Below, in pieces: positions 3,300 to 44,695 of a DNA stretch of 64,000 bases. The notes below the pieces were generated by a model. That model searched no databases. It saw only the letters and a list, made by a program, of their open reading frames with translations, and had not been told where the DNA came from. The stretch's first letter is position 1; every line of letters starts with the position of its first letter. A program made the translations under genes and the position numbers. This DNA is from Paragordius varius (Eukaryota; Animalia; Nematomorpha): the NCBI GenBank assembly GCA_964247055.1, contig OZ176050.1, positions 6,820,001-6,884,000 of the forward strand, read 5' to 3'.

Positions 3300-5697
3300 T
3301 CAGGGATTGGATAAACTTTTATCCCGAGATTTGTATGGATAGCCACGACTCCTCAGTTCTCTAACAACTCCGTTTGGTAATTTTCCTGACACAGAAACAG
3401 CGTAGCATCCCTTAACCATTTTGTCTAAATAGTGATTTGATATTATATAATAATTAGTAAAATTATTAAGACAAAACGTAAAAATTAAAAGAATTATTTT
3501 TTAAAAAGACCGCCACACTTATGAATATAGTGTGTTACCAAATTAAATCTCTAGCCTAACGATAAGTTATAATAATTGAAGGTGATATATAATTGTCTTT
3601 AAAAATATTTGTCTTTTAATTTTCACCTTTTTTTCTTTTTAATTGCAATTTTTACGTATATAGTAATCCAATAGGAATGTTTAATTTCCAAATGATGATT
3701 TCAAAATATAATAAAGCGGATACAACAAAAAAAGTTGTTTGCTAAAAATTTAGATGAAATGACATTTTGGTCGCTATTATTTAAATAAGTATGCAGGCAC
3801 GGCTCAACTATGTTCGTTATTATAAATTTGAGAGGAAAAAATTATTTTCGGGGTTATTTTATAATAATTTTATAATCTTTACAACAAAAAATAAGAAGTT
3901 AAAGTATAAAACTATATATAACCTAAAATGATCATCTTAATTTGGTGTAACAAGAAGCATTTGATTAAGCCCAATATGAGAATAATGTAAAAAATTTAAA
4001 ATAAAGTTATTGTTTTCGGGTTATTAAACCAAGATATTGAGAAAGAATTACCTAATTTAGAGTATAAATATTTAAAATAATAAAAGTTTATCCAATGAAC
4101 AGATAGAGTTTTATAATTGTTTTTTTGAGTTAGTTAAACCATGTATGTTCAGCATAAATGCTGTAAATAATACTTTTACTTAATATTACACTTTTTTGAA
4201 AAAATGAGTGCTTAATTTAAGGTATATTTCTTTCAAAAATAAAATTCGCAAACAATAAAATGGTCACACATGCATATTTAAAATATATTTACCTAAACGT
4301 TGCCATTTCGCAACCCAGCTATCTTCAGGAGACGTCAACGCCATTAGTCTAAAAAATATATAAAAGGGGAAAATGTAATTTTATATACTATAACTAATTA
4401 TATTATTTTAAAAATTCAAGCGACTTTAAGGTTCAAAATATATAATAAATAATAAGTAATAATATTTATCCTTCTTTAGAATAGATAAATGAAACGCTGC
4501 AATCCAAAAATATTGTGTTTGAAACTATTTGATGGAGTTATGCCGATCAGTAATTAAATGAAATATTACACTATGGATTAAATTTATGGTTATGGGTAAA
4601 TAATAGTTGCTTTTACGTTTTAAGCTAAAATATAATAATATATGTTTAGTGTTACCTTTGACCATTTTTTACCGATATTTGAAATTAACTTTATTTATGT
4701 GTAGTAATCGGTTTATATTTTCAATTTAAATTTAGTATAATTTTCGTTTTATTAAATATTATCTAACGGTTTTATAGTTTACGAAAATAATGCCTTAAAA
4801 CTTTAATAAAGATTAAATAAAAATATAAGTAACAAGCGAAAGTTAAATAAATTTGTTATTTATAAAAATTGAAATACTATCATATTGATTTAACAAATAT
4901 AAATTAAAAACTTAAATATAATCTATATATATAATTTAATCAATAGGTTAACCAATATATCCGGATTCATGATGTCATTGGCGAAAAGGTTATATAACCT
5001 ATTTTTTAAACAAAACCTACTTTCATAAAAATATCAATTTTATCTCGTTACGCGTTCGTAAATGGCGGCTTTAAGCGGTTCGCGCAAAAATATTATTTTT
5101 TCCTATCTAAAACATGTTTTTGCATTGAAAATGTAACATGGAATGAAACCTAAATACTCGCATTATTCTAAAACATGTAATATGGACGCAATTCAGGCAA
5201 ATTATGAACTGCCAAAGGCAATAAACTTGATTAAGAACGAAAATCGGTACCAATTTTAATCCTTGGAGAAAATAAATTATGTCAAAAAATTAAAGAATTG
5301 CCGTAAAGACTGTGTAAACATAAACGTTAATGGCCCCAAGCGCTTTATTTGAATTTTTTAAAAAAAATCTAAAAATTAATTATTGTCTCATAGTTAAATA
5401 GTTAAGAACCTTATTCTTCTCCTATTTATTCGAAAATATATATAAGATATGGTGTATAGGTAGTATAACATACATCAATAAGCATATATTAATAATATTA
5501 CCCATCGAAATTGGCGCTGGTATAATCAAAAACAGCGTCCCTATTATTTTTCATATGCAAAATTGATTCACAGTTATCACATCCATCCATTTCGAATTGA
5601 TCAGTTGTCTTATTAAATTAAATTATACCTTTACAAGTGAGCATAGCAAGCAAGCTCTCAATTGTTTAAAATCTTTGGGTACTGTTTCAAGAGACAT
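3300..5697 (-). CDS. SUPT4H1: Transcription elongation factor SPT4 (DSIF small subunit), 118 aa; exons 5697-5629, 5608-5502, 4348-4293, 3424-3300
   Basis: The spliced product [23 protein letters not shown]|[36 protein letters not shown]|[18 protein letters not shown]|[41 protein letters not shown] has the SPT4 zinc-binding CxxC...CxxC and SWVxKWQR motifs. All junctions are GT-AG and in phase; the CDS is 357 nt. Confidence 0.96.
5609..5628 (-). other. 20-nt spliceosomal intron (SPT4 intron 1), GTATAATTTAATTTAATAAG
   Basis: Removing it joins LCSLVK to TTDQFE in frame; read-through hits TAA immediately. Confidence 0.93.
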
Positions 5698-6630: not shown

Positions 6631-8740
6631 GGTGCCATATTCTGAAAGGAATATGTATCAGGATAATTTTGTCTCTAAGAGTGATACATGAAAGTTATTT
6701 ACATTTTGAGGTCAGTAATTTATATCAGAAAATGGCAAAATTTGCCCACTTTTTCTTAAATAAATTTTTTTTGGTCGCTAAATGCTTAATTCAAAAAAAT
6801 ATCACCAAAATATATCATAAACTATTAAAGCAATTTTTTAAAATTTTTAGATGGGGGCTCAAAAAATTCCAAATTTCGTTCTGAAAAATCGGCTAGCTTT
6901 CTTAAAATTACAACAATGACGAGATTCGCAACAAAGCTTTTTAATAATATATGGTAGAAGCTTGATTATAATATAAAAAATATTTTTGAAAAAAGACATG
7001 CTTTCTTCAAAAATTTAATTTTTAGCAAAATTTCGTTGAAGCGTACATACAAAATTAAAATGAAACGATATAAAAACACTTTTATATAATTCAAAGATGT
7101 TGAGCATTTCTATCATATCGTTTGATTATCTATTCGATTCAAATTGGGATATCTAAATACCCCTAGACTTAATTTAAATTAATATTAAAAAACTACTGGA
7201 GGAAACAGTCCCAATTAATATTAATGCTTCTATGCTAATAAAAATATAAAAAAGCCAAAATATCTAATAAAATTTCGTTATGAAAGTTCCATGTCAAACT
7301 ACTTGGACGCCATTTGTATTTTACAAAAATTTTGCAAAATATCGTATTTATTTGATTCTAACGTAAAAATTAAAGCTAATTTTTTATTTAAATTACATCT
7401 AACATTAATAGAAATAGAAAAAGTGGTTTATTTTGTATTAAAATTCAATTTAGCCAATAGACATATGTTACATTGTTTAAATTTTTACCTTTGAGTTTTA
7501 CATTAAAAAAAGAAATATCAAGTATTTTTGAATAAAATTTTTTTATATATTTCGGTTTATTAATGTTATATCGGTGCAAAATTTTTCCATGGTTTCGATT
7601 TCTTCTATATTTTTTAAAGTTACTAATTTTAAACAAGCCTGGGGTATCCAACTATCCCAATTTGAATTGAAGGACTGAAATGAATGTCTTGTATCCAAGT
7701 GTTAAATATTCGTTCGTCTTAAAATATATGTTAAATATAAATTGTTTTAGCAGGTAAATTCACCGAAATTTGAAAGAAAACGAATCTTTAAATATTCCGA
7801 AATTATGAAATATTCAGCATCCTTGAATTATTTGATCTAAGAGCGTTTATATTATACCGTTTTTACCGTGCTTCTAAGCAAGAATTACGCTTCGACAAAA
7901 CGCTAAAAATAATTTTATTTCGATGCCATAATCAGAGCAAAAATATCTGGATATCTCGGCATTTTTGCCTTTATTATAAGTGAACTAGCCTATTTTTGTA
8001 GGGGGACAAATTTGGGACCAAACTACATCTAAAATTTACAAATTTATAAAAATATTGTTATGCTTATATATATATATATCTTGTGATATATTTTAGTGAT
8101 ATTTTTTGGAATGAAGTATACCATTTCCCAGAGACGTAGTTGCATTTCTGACCTCCGTTGCATGAATCCGTAATGGCGCCCCCCCTCTATGCAACTCCTT
8201 GAATCTTCAAACCGTAGACATGGTCGCTCATAAATGGGTGATTTTTTTATTTATTATTTAAAAGAAAATTAAAAATCCGGCGCTTCTTCAATTATGGCGC
8301 CACGTGCATCAGCCCCCCTTTCCCTTCCCTAGCTATGCCTATGCCATTTCTTAGTCAATCAAAACGTCCAGTTAATCGAAACATCCAGTTAATCGAAATT
8401 TTCGCAGTCACTAAAAGCATTTCCCCAATCAATAAATAACGTTTTCCAAGTCAATAAAAATGGGGATTTTGATGATAAATATTAAAACAAGTTATAAAAA
8501 TAATATGAGGATATTAATAAGATATCTTTTTTTATAAAAATACAATAATTGAATAATTTTTTCTATTATATGCCAATACACATTAATTAATGACTAATTC
8601 TTACAAAGTTATATTTGAACACATGAATGAGTATTTTATGGTTTTCGAGATATTTTTAGAAAAAATATTTTTAAGATTTTTCATATTTTTATTATCGAGG
8701 ATTCGCAAATTATTTCGGGCTAACCTATAAAAATCTATAG

Positions 8741-9700
8741 CAGGGGTGGCCAAACGGTCGACCGCGACGTGATCGTCTAAAAATTAAAAAAATGCAAAAA
8801 TTTATTAAGATAATTTATTTTTCTAATATATTTGCATTTTTTTTAGAAAATAGTTTAAATTTAGGAAAAAAAGCACGTATTCTTTAAAAATATTTTAATA
8901 TGATTAAAAATTCAAGCCAGAAAAATATATCGTTATAAAATGAATGGTAAATTTTTTTTATAATTAAATTATAAATGTACTTGCTTGATAACTCCACCAA
9001 GGCTTTGCCTAAAAAAGCAAATGTCCAACGATATTTTACTGCGCTTCACATAAAGTATCAAAAATGCAAATCAGATATAGCAAATTAACAATCAAGCTAA
9101 TGAAAGAGCAAATTGCTTAGAAACACTACAAAATCAAAAAAAATCCATAATCCCAAGTTACAACATATCAGAAATCCTAATAAAAAAACAACAAATCTTT
9201 TTGAGACTGAGAAATTTAGAAAGAAGCTTTATTAAACCTTTTAAAGTGTTTAAAAATTATGAAGACTAAAGGGATATTATGGAATCAATAAGCTTAGAAA
9301 CACAATTATGCGGAGAGGTAATGATCTTAATTAGAATCTTACCGAAATTTTACATGTTTTTTTAGAGCAAAATTTCAGAAGTCAAATCAGAAAAATGCTT
9401 CAAATCACTGCTTTTTAATTTATTAGCAATGTACATTTTTTCCGAGATATCGCATCAAAAACCAAAATCAAGAAGCGAAAGATCTCAGTTGTGGTTATCA
9501 ATAATTTTTCTTCTGTAAAATAGATAAATTCGCAGTAAAATTGTCTTAATATAATGCAATACGACATGACCCTTTTATTTGTATTAATTTCACTATGTCA
9601 ACACTGAATCCTTTTACTAAGCTCAAAATTGCGGCGCGACACTATTTTCGATTTGATGTTTACTAACTTAAAGCATATGTCCATTATTTAAAACCTGGTA
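8741..9700 (+). mobile_element. Degenerate hAT (Charlie/SPIN-like) transposon 5' part, cut by a Helitron at 9715
   Basis: Starts with the TIR-like CAGGGGTGGCCAAAC. The downstream broken peptide KKANVQRYFTALH resembles the KxYNxxRHYxTxH motif of this clade. Confidence 0.45.
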
Positions 9701-18153: not shown

Positions 18154-18226
18154 TGTTTCTGCCCGGGATCGAACCGGGGACCTTGTGCGTGTGAAGCACA
18201 CGTGATAACCACTACACTACAGAAAC
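18154..18226 (-). tRNA. tRNA-Val (anticodon CAC)
   Basis: GTTTCTGTAGTGTAGTGGTTATCACGTGTGCTTCACACGCACAAGGTCCCCGGTTCGATCCCGGGCAGAAACA: 73 nt, full cloverleaf, anticodon stem TGTGC/GCACA, GTTCGA T-loop, followed by a T-run terminator. Confidence 0.96.
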
Positions 18227-18265: not shown

Positions 18266-18978
18266 ATGGATTTTAATTGCAAAGATGCTTTTGACCTAAT
18301 TAAAGATTTGGAGAGTGATGAGCTTAAGCCCTTTGATGTAATTAACTATTAATATTTTAGGAAGAAAAAATTAAAAAAATATATGATCAAATGATGGTTT
18401 TGTACAGAGCGAATCAGATTGATGCGTATATATTTATTTAATTTTTGTGAAACTTCGATTAATGAAATAGCGCACTACACAACGATATTAGCAAGACATT
18501 CTGCCTTAGAAAGAAATAAACGATGTTTATTAAATTATATGTATATTTGTCCGTAATTTAAAGTTATTTTCGGCTTCAAAAAATTCAGCATGCCCGCTGG
18601 GATTATGGATTTGTTTTGCCTAATATAATTCTCCAAAATATGAGTGATACCGAAGTTATTATGCATATAAATCCAGGTAAATTGGTATAAAAGTTACAAT
18701 CAACTCATAAACACGCTTTTATCAGATTCGGGATTTACCGAACTTGGATCCGATATGATTTTTTCGAAAATACCCCCTAAATCGTCACTAATAAAAGTTT
18801 TCTTTATTACAACCGATAGGTTCGCTGCCTTAAAGATTTCGATTATGAAAAAGATGATGGAGAAATTATTAGTTTCAAAACTCATTCTCAAGTTTTTATA
18901 AATTTATTTTAGCATTTCCTACCTCGATCAATTTGTCAACAATTTATCAACCAAGGATTTTTACAACACATATATTAA
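18266..18978 (+). CDS. GINS1: DNA replication GINS complex subunit PSF1, 192 aa; exons 18266-18337, 18361-18425, 18448-18540, 18564-18654, 18677-18796, 18820-18891, 18913-18978
   Basis: The spliced product MDFNCKDAFDLIKDLESDELKPFD|EEKIKKIYDQMMVLYRANQIDA|ETSINEIAHYTTILARHSALERNKRCLLNYI|YFRLQKIQHARWDYGFVLPNIILQNMSDTE|VNWYKSYNQLINTLLSDSGFTELGSDMIFSKIPPKSSLIK|VRCLKDFDYEKDDGEIISFKTHSQ|HFLPRSICQQFINQGFLQHIY* carries the PSF1 motifs RNKRC, RWxYG, PPKS, VRCLKD and SQHFLPR. It needs six introns of 23, 22, 23, 22, 23 and 21 nt. Confidence 0.95.
18338..18360 (+). other. 23-nt intron (GINS1 intron 1), GTAATTAACTATTAATATTTTAG
   Basis: GT-AG, phase 0; retention gives an in-frame TAA. Confidence 0.92.
18426..18447 (+). 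other. 22-nt intron with non-canonical GT..TG ends (GINS1 intron 2), GTATATATTTATTTAATTTTTG
   Basis: This is the only boundary that keeps the TILARH helix in frame. The AG at 18469-18470 shifts the frame. It may be a one-base assembly error. Confidence 0.65.
18541..18563 (+). other. 23-nt intron (GINS1 intron 3), GTATATTTGTCCGTAATTTAAAG
   Basis: GT-AG, phase 2; joins RCLLNY to YFRLQKI in frame. Confidence 0.92.
18655..18676 (+). other. 22-nt intron (GINS1 intron 4), GTTATTATGCATATAAATCCAG
   Basis: GT-AG, phase 0; joins MSDTE to VNWYKSY. Confidence 0.9.
18797..18819 (+). other. 23-nt intron (GINS1 intron 5), GTTTTCTTTATTACAACCGATAG
   Basis: GT-AG, phase 0; joins PPKSSLIK to VRCLKD. Confidence 0.92.
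18892..18912 (+). other. 21-nt intron (GINS1 intron 6), GTTTTTATAAATTTATTTTAG
   Basis: GT-AG, phase 0; joins HSQ to HFLPR. The length is 3n, but the terminal TAG is an in-frame stop if retained. Confidence 0.92.
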
Positions 18979-23687: not shown

Positions 23688-26600
23688 ATGCAATATTATG
23701 TTAATATATGCTTCCCATTTTTATCATGGATTATCTTCCTAATTATCAATCCGATACCTTTATGCAAAATTTTGATATGTTGGGCTCAGTACTGTGACTC
23801 ACAAAGTAATATAATATATATAAAATTAACCAAAAAGTTTATCTAAAAGTTTTATTTAAGAATATTGGCAACTCAAAATTTTAATTATTAATGTTATATG
23901 GTACGATACGTTAAGATTGTGTTTAGCGAAATTTCCGTGCGTCAGCCTGTATTTTTGTTTTATTATTATAATGTACAAGCCATTAATATGAATTTAGATG
24001 AAAATGTAAATGGTAAAATTTAAATAAAATTGATAAAGGAGACACGGTAGTTTGCAAACCGTTATTGTAAATAAATTTTTTTATTATTTCTGATAAAGTA
24101 ATTCTATATATATATTAAGTAGTATCCTAATATCTGGAATATACCATTCCTTTTAAGTTACACATATTTCAATTAATATTCTCCATATTAAATCTGCAAA
24201 TAGCACCAATCGAAATAACAAGCATATCTTGTGACTGCCCAAATGGTTTTTATTCCGTTTATACCCCATCGGGGGCTGGTCCGTTTCGCATTTACCTGAT
24301 TGGGGATGAGAATGGCGAAGTTAAAGCAAAGTTAGGTAGATCGGGAGCATGGAACTTTGAACAAAATACACCCTTTGCAAAATTAGCGGCTCAATTTTTG
24401 TCCCAAACAGAACTAAATTTTGTGGCAGCTTTACAAGATCCAGTAATTGACATTGTCACAGATATTAATTTCAGAATAGCTCATGAATACGGGACAAATC
24501 CATCCTATTTAACTGTAAGGTTGGTGAAATTTTTCTTATTTTCAACTCTATTTTTTTTAAATGTATTTACTGAAAAAATTACATGATTTCAAACTCGTTA
24601 TTATCAATAATATTTCCCCTCATATTTTTGTTGTTATATTATTTTGTTCAAATAAATATTGTCGAATAAGGACATGCATAATATAATTTCAGGGGCACAT
24701 GGCCAGCATAGTTTCAACTGAGAATGGAATTAATAGTATTTTGGCTTCGGTTCAAAATTAATTATTATGATTTTGATTTCGCCATTATTACGGTTCCAAA
24801 GAATAGTCAATAATATTGCTCTGGTTCCATTGTGTTTTATCAATAATTCCATATTTTAATAAAATTGTAGATAACCAAATATTTTGATGCAACTTGAATG
24901 AAATCCAATAATACAAATCAAAGTTTTTTAAAACTCAAATTTAATGTAAAAAACCACGGTTTTATTTTTCCAATATATTCGAATTTTCGACATACTATTT
25001 AAATAAAAATATTTTTTTTTCGTTTGGCCATTTATTAACATTGAACTCAAAATTGCTATATCGAATCTACAACAAATAGAAATTAGAAAACAATAGACCC
25101 TTTTGCAAAAGATGCTGGGATTGAAGCCACACCCTATTTTGCACAACCGTTTTTATAATTTTGTGGAACTAAAACCAAAAACCGCTCCGGCTGCAATCCT
25201 TAATTTACTCTTAATAAAGATCCCAAAGTGGGTTTGACGAAATATCTCCCTGATATTCCTTTTTTTAGATTATATACTAATTTCTTAAATTAAAAAATAA
25301 ATAATTTTTTTGTCAAAAGTAATGATTAGCGCATCAATACTGATGTTCAGATTTGTTGAATCCATTGGACAGGTTCAACTACGAAATATTACTAATTGGC
25401 ACACTGGTGTTTCTGCAATTATTTTTAAGAAATTAAAATATCTTGTAATTTAGCATAATAAGTTGATCTGATATTTTTACATCATTAAACATTAATCTAA
25501 ACCACGGGGTTCAACATGCGCCATTTGCTAGCTGTGAAAAATTCGGAAATAAAATTGATATCTCTCAAACAAATTTCATGAATACGTCTTGTCAACGAAC
25601 TAGCAATAATGTTTGTTGCGTTAGCTTTTTACAGTACTAGGTTTAAAATTTAAGCAGATAATATATATATATATATATTTCGAATGCGGCCCACGATGTT
25701 GTTGGACATCCGTGGTCTAAACATTTAAAAAACATCATACGCTTCAATAGTCAACATTGCTTTGCTTTTTATTTTTCAACAATTTTTTGTTATTTCCCGC
25801 TATATTTACATAAATCCTAAATATATCAATATATATAGGTATCTTGAAGATTTATCAATCCCGTCCACTATATGCATGACGCACGGAAATGTTGGAGGAT
25901 ATCAAAACACTAATCTACTCTACAGGCCATCACGATCAATAATAGAATACGAAGAAGAGCAATTTGGCTATAACCCGTTTCATTCAAGAGGAACACGACC
26001 TTATCGCCCGCATAGAAGGCCTGGACAACCTTATGGTCCTCACAGAAGACCTCCAAATCCTTTTTGGCGAACAAATATTCTACCAGCCGGACAAACTGGT
26101 TACAATCCCTATGGTAATGTTATCAATCCATATGGTGCTAATAATATCGGCCAACAATCAACTTCTCTCGTGTTTGATGGTAGGAGTCAGGTAATATGTA
26201 AATCTCAGACCTCGGTATCACCGACTTCTTATACACCTTATGGGGGTAATGCAAGATCCGGAATTTGCGGTAAATGTGGAACACCCTACGCTGGACAATC
26301 TTCACCAGATTTTTTGCTCGAATCCGTAGATTTAGGGACAGTAAATGGGAATTGGTTTATATTTACTGGCTCTTACTACTATGTCTATGTAACCATCAAG
26401 AATTGTGTAAAATATTATATACAAGTTCTTTTGTGCATCAATACATGCAAAATTAATTTTCCCATAAACGGTTTTAATACGTTTTTTTCCTTGTCATTAG
26501 GCTAAATCTCCATCCCAGCCTTCAAACTCGTATCAAACCCAAATCCCTGGTTCGGTCCCAAATGAGGGTGGTGGTAGCGAGATTAGACCAGGCGGCTTCC

Positions 26601-29600: not shown

Positions 29601-32600
29601 ATAACCTATCGTTAATGTCTAATAAATAGGATATCCTTATAATTTTACTGGAAGTTAAAACATATTTTATATATAAAAAATATATTTCAAGTTTATATTT
29701 AATAATGGAACTTGTCACACTATAAAAAATTGATATGATAAACTAAATTACAGTAAAAACTGAAATTATACACTGAAAACGTAAAAATATAAAGACAAAT
29801 ATTTTTTTATAAAAGACAACCATAGTTTTTTAATCTTGTTTAATATAACTGATGGTTTTAAACTGAATTCATGAAATTGATATGTAAATCGGTGAAACAA
29901 TCAATTATATATTTAACAATTCTAGTTAAATAATTTATATGAAAAAAATTCAGGTTTAATAAAAAGTATGATTGTCTTTTGAAAAAAATATTTGTCTTTT
30001 TATTTTTACGTTTTGTCCGTATAATTTCAATTTTTACTGTATATTAGGTTGGGTTTTGAAAAGATTATTTCATATTTGCAACAAATGAGTGAGTGTGTTA
30101 ATTTTTTTATTGAATAATTATTCGGATGAAAAGAATAAATTTAATTTAATGTAATACGGATGTTAAACTACGAGATCAATCGTTACTAATTAAAATTTTT
30201 GTTTTACAAATGAATCTTTATAATGTATAAATGTCTTCTTTAGGTTGTGGAGTTCCCAAAACACCTGATACCCGAAAACGCCGTCAAATAGGTTTGTACC
30301 CATTTTTTATCAGTAATGCAAGTGTCACCAAATAGTATTATATATCGATACCATTTACACCTCAAATTCTCCATTAGACATTTCAAAACCTTTAATCTTA
30401 AAAAACCCTGAATGAAAATTATAAGTTTTTGGAGTAATCTAACTCATTATTTATATAAAATATTTCATTTTTTTCTCTATTATGCCAATTTTAACCAAAG
30501 TTATATTATTTAAAAATATCAAAAACATTAGTAATTTTTGATTTCCAAGAACAGTTAATATATTTTAGGGGAATTTAAATATTGGAGGGTTAATATGAAA
30601 TTAACAAGAGTTATTTGAAATGTTCATAAATGAGTTCAAAATGTTTGAGGTGAATTAGGAGGGTGATTTGAGAGTTTTAGTGTGAAACTGAGTTACAAAT
30701 GGTAATTTTGGAAAATATAGAATATGGCTACAATGAATTTTCGCGAATGAAATCATCAAATAAAATTTCCACGAGAGTACCATTGTTGCCGAAAAATACG
30801 ACAGTAGATCAAGCTAGAATTCTGTATGGTGTCCCATCTAAAAGAGGTTCTTGGCCTTGGCAGGCAAGTATTCGACATAAAGGCATTCATTTATGTGGTG
30901 GATCCCTTGTGTCTGATAAATACGTAATTACTGCCGCACATTGTCAATTTGGAAGAAGGTATAAAACAATATTTGTTTTGTTTAAAGAGTATTGATTTAA
31001 ATTATGATTTATATATGATTTGTGTTTTATTATATATATTCCAAAAATTTTAATTTAAAACAATACTATTTTAATATATTAGAGTAAGTCTAATATTTGA
31101 ATAAAAGCTGAATATATTGGTAGCTTTGCTAACATTGTGAAATAGAAGCTATTTACATACCGCCTATCATTCTATTGCAAATTTATTATAAATAATTAGT
31201 ATTACCATGTATTTTCAAATTTAATTTTTTTGATATAGAAATCCGTCAGACGTTACCCTGAGTTTTGGAACATTATTTTCTGGTGGGGTTACCGATGAAT
31301 CGGAGCAGACAAGACGAGCTGTGCGAATTATAGAACATGAGAATTTTAACCAAGGTATAAATATGCATAGCGATATAATTTATTAGAGGTAAAATCAAAC
31401 TTATTCTATGATAAATAATATTTTTATTCAAATATTGTAAATTGTTTTGATTCCTTGAAAATTTTAATTGCAACCGTCGCCCTAAAAACATTATAAGTAT
31501 TCAAGGCTACTCTATAGTAGTCTGATTGGCTATGAAGGAATCGAAACCATGTCTGTGATCGCATTCAAAAATAACTGGTCAAAAATGCTTCAATACATGT
31601 TTATTATATAATGCAAACTAAATATAATGGTGAAAGTGTTTGATACAAATGTTAGATTTTTGAATATAACATTTAAAATGTCATTTATCAAAAGTTATTT
31701 ACCGCTACAAGCGATTTAATTGGCTAAATTCGTTTTTTTTAAATTTTTGAATAAAAAGTATAATAGTGTTTATCATTCTGAAGGACTGCATGGCAGTCAG
31801 ATTGTTTATTTTAACATTCTTTCGGGAATTGTACAGTTTATGTAAAAGATATTATACTATAATTTGGATTAAATAACCCCTTAATTGATTGACCCTTTTG
31901 AAATAATAATTATTTTGTGAATACTTAACATTCAGATATAATAAATATTAATTCCATTTATTAATTTTATTTATATTCGCTTTATAAACTTTGTGAAAAT
32001 TATCATTATTTGAATTTTTAATATCCATTTTGATTAGGTCTTAAATTTAATAATGATATTGCCATAATTGAACTGGACTCACCAGTACAGTTTACCGACT
32101 ATGTTTCCCCGATTTGTTTGCCCAATTCTGAGTATACACCTTCAATGCTGTGCTATGTTACTGGATACGGATCTACAAAAGGTTTTCTAAAAATATAATG
32201 TGTCTATATGTTTAGGGAAAAATGTATTTACTTTTGTATATTTTACTTTGAGAATAGCAAGAAATTTTTAAGGACAATTTTAAGCTTATAAAAATAAATC
32301 AAAACCATTTGGCGCCAAGTATATCCTTAACTATTTCCATGTAAATTTTTGAAAATATAAGATATGGGGAAGAAAGCACGTATAATACATGATAATTTTG
32401 AGGCTAGATTATCCATTAAGAAAAATTTTCATATGTACAGAACTACAAAAGTTTCTTGACAAATATAAATAATTAGGCACCGGTGTGGAGAATGTGTTAA
32501 ATGAGGTCGCGTTACCTATAATAACTAAATCACAATGTTTGGACCCTAACTGGTTAGGAGACAAAGTTAATGATAATATGATATGTGCCGGAGGTGGAGA

Positions 32601-37507: not shown

Positions 37508-44695
<7,188 letters not shown>

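Follow-up and report, generated by a model that had tools for sequence, protein, structure and literature searches.

We identified a 20-nt interruption of the essential SPT4 gene at positions 5609-5628 of the window, i.e., of the whole 64,000-nt stretch of DNA that was analysed. It is likely, with a probability of about 0.7, a genuine U2-type GT..AG spliceosomal intron. Judged from sequence comparison, it would be the shortest found of a genome-wide class of micro-introns.

The SPT4 gene and its first intron

The original prediction described introns of 20, 1153 and 868 nt within one SPT4 gene. We found these coordinates and lengths to be exact and SPT4 to be a four-exon gene on the minus strand, with human SPT4 matched exon by exon. 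Here, each exon was searched singly against the sequences of solved structures. Exon 1 (5697-5629) comprises codons 1-23, starting with the ATG at 5697-5695, and matches residues 1-23 of human SPT4 (E 1.3e-7, 20/23 identical); nine bases upstream of this ATG, an in-frame TAG is found (5706-5704). It is followed by intron 1 (5628-5609; GTATAATTTAATTTAATAAG), which is 20 nt long, of phase 0, starts with GT, ends with AG, shows 90% A+T and contains an in-frame TAA. Exon 2 (5608-5502, 107 nt) provides the second Cys pair of the zinc finger and corresponds to human residues 24-59 (E 1.6e-11). Intron 2 (5501-4349, 1153 nt, GTAATA..TTTTAG, phase 2) separates it from exon 3 (4348-4293, 56 nt; human residues 60-77, E 1e-4). 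Finally, intron 3 (4292-3425, 868 nt, GTAAAT..ATTTAG, phase 1) precedes exon 4 (3424-3300), whose 125 nt include the TGA stop at 3302-3300 and match human residues 82-115 (E 5e-10). All features are given on the minus strand.

Together, the exons cover 357 nt, i.e., 118 codons and the stop. The gene is found in one copy in the assembly, all its exons are intact, and its product is about 74% identical to human SPT4. The zinc-binding cysteines form two CxxC pairs, CLLC from exon 1 and CDNC from exon 2, and the spacer between both pairs has 13 residues, as in human SPT4, given the 20-nt splice. Exon 2 alone is recognised by the Pfam family Spt4 (PF06093) with 36.9 bits (cut-off 25; profile positions 12-46), and exon 3, which was searched separately, extends this match (profile positions 47-65). 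Exon 1 alone has no Pfam match, either with or without its terminal Val-Lys, since the piece is too short; hence, Pfam makes no decision between an intron of 20 nt and the 26-nt alternative discussed below.

The location of intron 1 is fixed by homology. That is, the end of exon 1 and the start of exon 2 meet at residues 23/24 of human SPT4 with zero gap only if 5609-5628 are removed, such that GTATAA...ATAAG sits precisely between codons 23 and 24. Given the base composition of this region, the chance to observe both GT and AG at the two homology-fixed ends is about 0.25%. If the 20 nt were retained, a TAA would follow codon 24 and the reading frame would be shifted; the segment must therefore be removed. 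Retention would leave no functional protein, the next ATG (Met30) being located downstream of the first Cys pair.

We also compared the splice signals of this intron with those of the micro-intron class introduced in the following section. Among the 27 curated micro-introns, it is the shortest, the remaining 26 being 21-31 nt long. With 7.75 bits, its 5' profile score is among the highest; the 3' end (AATAAG) scores 2.25 bits, which is the fourth lowest value of the 27. The low 3' score results from three positions, i.e., -6, -5 and -3, which are T in 20/25, 20/25 and 18/25 class members, respectively, and A in SPT4 intron 1. A pyrimidine-rich stretch in front of the AG is absent from this intron. 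The motif TTAAT is found twice and provides an A at position 11, 9 nt before the 3' end, as well as one at position 16, 4 nt before it. The latter coincides with a weak A peak of the class at positions 16-17, and yUnAy-like motifs are present in only about half of the class members. Signals of the U12 type ([AG]TATCCTT at the 5' end, TCCTTAAC as branch site) are absent; the 5' ends of the SPT4 introns read GTATAATT, GTAATATT and GTAAATAT. These 5' ends rule out introns of the minor spliceosome (U12 type).

The two long introns had been said to contain transposon-like debris. This is correct for intron 3 and hardly so for intron 2. Within intron 3, a dispersed repeat at 3440-3661 (no strand assigned) consists of two segments that share their genomic match sites, though in opposite orientations. 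It has 55 scored matches in the genome (from 176 first-look candidates), which are spread over most contigs and both strands with 76-90% identity. Given this paired, opposite arrangement of the matches, the repeat can be described as a small MITE-like element with inverted ends, and a degenerate inverted repeat is found at 3473-3506 and 3598-3631. Intron 2 is nearly unique genome-wide, i.e., only a single 80-nt match of 80% identity is observed. An Rfam search of the SPT4 locus returned no family, e.g., no intron-hosted snoRNA.

Micro-introns across the genome

Predicted micro-introns of about 20-31 nt, mostly 22-29 nt, form a genome-wide class at the 5' ends of genes. The sample is based on Pfam searches of the genome for HSP70, CCT, protein kinase and Ras-type GTPase domains, which provided exon-wise matches in 88 gene loci. 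An open segment was accepted as an exon only if it had a match in a segment of another gene. Wherever consecutive segments aligned to one and the same paralogue, the intron length was predicted from the anchors of this alignment, and a GT..AG pair that keeps the alignment continuous was sought thereafter. This resulted in 44 distinct paralogue-anchored junctions. In nearly all of them, GT..AG is found at exactly the predicted length, which validates the approach.

The 44 anchored junctions fall into three size classes. The micro class covers 16/44 junctions with lengths of 22, 23 (five times), 25, 26 (four times), 28 (four times) and 29 nt, such that sizes of 23-28 nt are the most common. No anchored junction is found between 30 and 56 nt (0/44). 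A short class of 57-104 nt contributes 13/44 and a long class of 165-1385 nt the other 15/44, where the sizes of the long class are bounded, since the gene loci extend only about 1.5 kb to each side of the match. Within CCT genes, introns are mostly 220-1270 nt long (measured between profile matches).

Ten more micro-introns of 21-31 nt were curated directly. Nine of them reside in conserved kinase cores, where they were read via the continuity of motifs, and one is intron 1 of GINS1 from this window; one doubtful kinase case of 43 nt was omitted from the curated set. The resulting 26 curated introns of 21-31 nt resemble the ultra-short intron class of animals with regard to both their size below 30 nt and a 5' signal that is reduced to GTW. 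Overall, the consensus of the class is weak: its members start with GTW, have a short run rich in T in front of the AG and about 85% A+T, and a slight A peak is observed at a distance of 16-17 nt from the 5' end. The splice signals of micro, short and long introns (GTW at the 5' end, T-rich stretch before AG) show no clear difference in this small sample.

Scanning for GT..AG based on open frames alone revealed no excess compared to control dinucleotide pairs or the antisense strand. Such scans are uninformative here because chance open frames are too common at 72% A+T and the exons next to micro-introns are too short. One further candidate for a 20-nt intron (contig C5, position 2896249) was rejected, as the junction is an artefact of an out-of-frame alignment and the true intron has 71 nt. 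A small-GTPase gene on the plus strand of the same contig (5361143-5361730) shows four profile matches that are separated by 1, 1 and 4 nt and overlap in their profile positions, which would imply three consecutive introns of about 19-22 nt.

Micro-introns precede longer ones in every sampled gene that has both kinds. Listed in order, the introns have 23, 28 and 69 nt in BiP; 23, 28 and 67 nt in a GTPase gene at C1:108378xx; 23, 26 and 1385 nt in another GTPase gene at C3:88478xx; 29, 25, about 1400 and about 66 nt in a CDK gene (locus L047); 26 and 607 nt in a CCT gene at C1:98873xx; and 20, 1153 and 868 nt in SPT4. It had been argued that tiny and kilobase introns within one gene are hard to explain by contamination. 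Contamination can indeed be dismissed. The coexistence of tiny and kilobase introns is the rule in the sampled genes of this genome, though it is not unprecedented. The accompanying statement that micro-intron organisms usually have uniformly tiny introns was too strong: parasitic flatworms mix intron length peaks at 37, 90 and about 3000 bp (PMC6530080).

GINS1, which is located in this window, has tiny introns throughout. Its second interruption (about 18425-18446, plus strand) reads GT..TG with 22 nt, based on frame and homology judged by eye, and no frame-keeping GT..AG solution was found for it. Upstream of GINS1, a tRNA gene on the opposite strand (18154-18226, minus strand; Rfam 66 bits) precedes the start codon (18266) by 40 nt.

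Alternative readings and mode of splicing

The closest competitor shares the idea of a real intron and differs in its length. Here, the intron would have 26 nt (5634-5609), using the GT of the Val22 codon (GTA) as donor together with the same AG, such that SPT4 would lack Val22-Lys23; alternatively, both donors might be used. The respective GT (5633-5634, minus strand) provides the sole other frame-keeping GT..AG combination within 60 nt. A length of 26 nt is common in the class (4/26), while 20 nt is otherwise unseen in the curated sample; the 26-nt splice keeps the frame, and its 5' end GTAAAG is acceptable as a donor given that the class consensus is GTW only. On the protein level, however, the residues SLVK at the end of exon 1 are identical in human SPT4 and sit flush against residue 24, which argues against the longer intron. 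Its removal would also shorten the spacer between the Cys pairs of the zinc finger, within a stretch that is 21/24 identical to human. In yeast Spt4, the same four residues separate the second Cys from the Thr that is aligned to the start of exon 2, which we likewise count against 26 nt. On the splice signal level, positions +6 and +7 of the intron would both be G with the upstream donor, a base that is observed there in only 1/25 class members each, and the 5' score drops from 7.75 to 3.37 bits. We thus consider a 26-nt intron, or a use of both donors, unlikely.

An origin of the 20 nt from assembly or sequencing errors, or an SPT4 locus that is decaying as a pseudogene, is still less probable. 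The AT-rich, low-complexity composition of the segment (AATTT is repeated) would fit an artefact, but an artefactual insertion would show GT and AG at its exact ends in only about 0.25% of cases, and similar interruptions recur across dozens of conserved genes. Against a pseudogene speak the single copy, the intact exons and the high identity to human SPT4. The same segment could be removed or bypassed without a spliceosome, i.e., via IRE1- or tRNA-endonuclease-type cleavage, translational bypass or somatic DNA elimination, which we consider barely credible. Nothing specific speaks for such a route, and it is considered only since 20 nt are below the classical steric limit of lariat formation. 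It is opposed by the GT..AG ends, which intron 1 shares with all other introns studied here, by the missing match in Rfam at the SPT4 locus and by the lack of a G+C-rich stem-loop of the IRE1 type, which follows from the 90% A+T of the segment. Furthermore, for myxozoan introns that are just as short, the evidence supports canonical U2-dependent splicing (PMC13644364).

Assuming that 5609-5628 is a 20-nt spliceosomal intron, the major spliceosome would remove it by intron definition, the two splice sites being recognised as a pair across the intron, and the A at position 11 or 16 within the TTAAT motifs would serve as branch point. For the two longer SPT4 introns, exon definition might apply instead, such that their splice sites are paired over the exons of 107 and 56 nt. 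Two modes of recognition acting on one SPT4 pre-mRNA are plausible. If the 20-nt intron is confirmed, one spliceosome would handle a 50-fold size range per transcript, given introns of 20 nt and 1 kb in one pre-mRNA, and SPT4 would provide a natural system to study minimum intron length as well as the choice between intron and exon definition.

Host genome and relation to known tiny introns

The assembly covers 110.6 Mb in 44 contigs, and the window has about 28% G+C. The mitochondrial contig of the assembly (15,693 bp) provides information on the organism. COX1 can be read cleanly only if TGA encodes Trp and AGA encodes Ser, i.e., using the invertebrate code. The contig contains many long perfect inverted repeats, whose arms reach up to 208 nt, and 14 of its 15 longest hairpins are located entirely within open frames. 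Hairpins within mitochondrial coding sequences have been described as exclusive to Nematomorpha (PMC10380579). Given both the invertebrate mitochondrial code and the long hairpins in coding frames, the organism is very probably a hairworm. The same two features led us to reject a myxobolid myxozoan, which would have fitted with regard to G+C content and tiny introns. A preprint lists 200-300 Mb for the hairworm genomes studied before, about twice the size of this assembly; the difference may reflect an unusual species or a partial assembly. Directly upstream of the mitochondrial COX1 (7480-8820), about ten units of 72 nt are found at 6752-7451 of the contig (C44), each containing a hairpin of 49-52 nt. 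ARAGORN with default settings reported no tRNA on the whole 15.7-kb mitochondrial contig. A COX1-like fragment with six stops on a nuclear contig (C1:10612280-10612597) is probably a mitochondrial insertion.

According to a 2026 survey, introns below 30 nt are limited among animals to Myxobolidae and Dicyema japonicum, in both cases with support from long-read RNA (PMC13644364). Their documentation in two other animal lineages implies that introns of this size can be spliced. Respective medians are 22-27 nt, and length classes of 20-27 nt have been analysed (PMC13644364). The micro-introns predicted here share with those of myxobolid myxozoans and Dicyema japonicum the spliceosomal type below 30 nt, signals of about GTa..AG, weak A's upstream of the AG and parasitic hosts. 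In contrast, myxobolids and Dicyema belong to the cnidarians and dicyemids, respectively, and tiny introns represent the median in their compact genomes, while the hairworm is an ecdysozoan with a repeat-rich assembly of 110.6 Mb. Here, tiny introns are a minority (16/44 sampled junctions) beside kilobase introns. Hairworms are not mentioned in the respective study (PMC13644364).

With regard to gene architecture, the closest parallel is provided by flatworms (Opisthorchis felineus, other flukes, tapeworms and monogeneans). Beyond the multi-peak intron lengths cited above, flatworm microintrons are clustered at the 5' ends of genes, they are easily missed by annotation software, and a distinction between intron definition for microintrons and exon definition elsewhere has already been proposed (PMC6530080). 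Multiple size peaks, micro-introns at 5' ends and long introns within the same genes are shared by flatworms and the hairworm. They differ in phylum and in the position of the micro peak, which is about 37 nt in flatworms and about 23-28 nt in the hairworm with a floor near 20-21 nt. On the sequence level, the hairworm thus shows an architecture of the flatworm type with a micro peak that is apparently moved into the size range of myxozoans and dicyemids.

Tiny introns are also found in Paramecium (about 25 nt), Stentor (15-16 nt) and the nucleomorph of Bigelowiella; that is, a spliceosome can remove introns of 15-25 nt. These systems are unicellular and essentially all of their introns are tiny, i.e., the same genes are without kilobase introns, which distinguishes them from the hairworm. 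Ciliate tiny introns are treated also in PMC5014332 and PMC13644364. For Drosophila and C. elegans, short introns are subject to intron definition (PMC5762160). Both species resemble the hairworm in combining short and long introns per gene with differing modes of splice-site pairing, but their minimum of about 40-60 nt is 2-3 times the size observed here.

In the literature searched, no report on hairworm intron sizes was found, and the word 'intron' is nowhere used in the preprint on the Gordionus genome. If the predicted introns are confirmed, an ecdysozoan joins the animal lineages with introns below 30 nt. A more far-reaching reading takes hairworms as the third independent animal lineage with introns below 30 nt (down to 20 nt) while their other introns are of ordinary or kilobase size, and proposes a specialised cap-proximal splicing that works without a pyrimidine tract or the usual distance from the branch site to the 3' splice site. 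We regard this reading as tentative and rather doubtful. Gene prediction that requires introns of at least 30-40 nt would introduce frameshifts into the 5' ends of many hairworm genes. If such a novel hairworm mode exists, published hairworm gene sets may suffer from pipelines that forbid introns this short, and part of the universal metazoan gene loss reported for hairworms may be an effect of annotation.

Between its genes, the window is rich in repeats, since dispersed sequences at about 7.2-7.7, 9.7-10.7, 15.0-16.1, 46.8-47.4, 48.6-50.0 and 61-63.2 kb show mutual matches in every frame of either strand. Applied to the window itself, the paralogue-anchored approach was overwhelmed by such repeats. 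The window also contains an apparent tandem duplicate on the plus strand, with one copy at 25762-26505 and 30699-30995 and the other at 37968-38561, 43444-43725 and 44199-44504. Each copy comprises a Pro-rich, Cys-containing open reading frame without Pfam match and, downstream of it, trypsin-domain exons.
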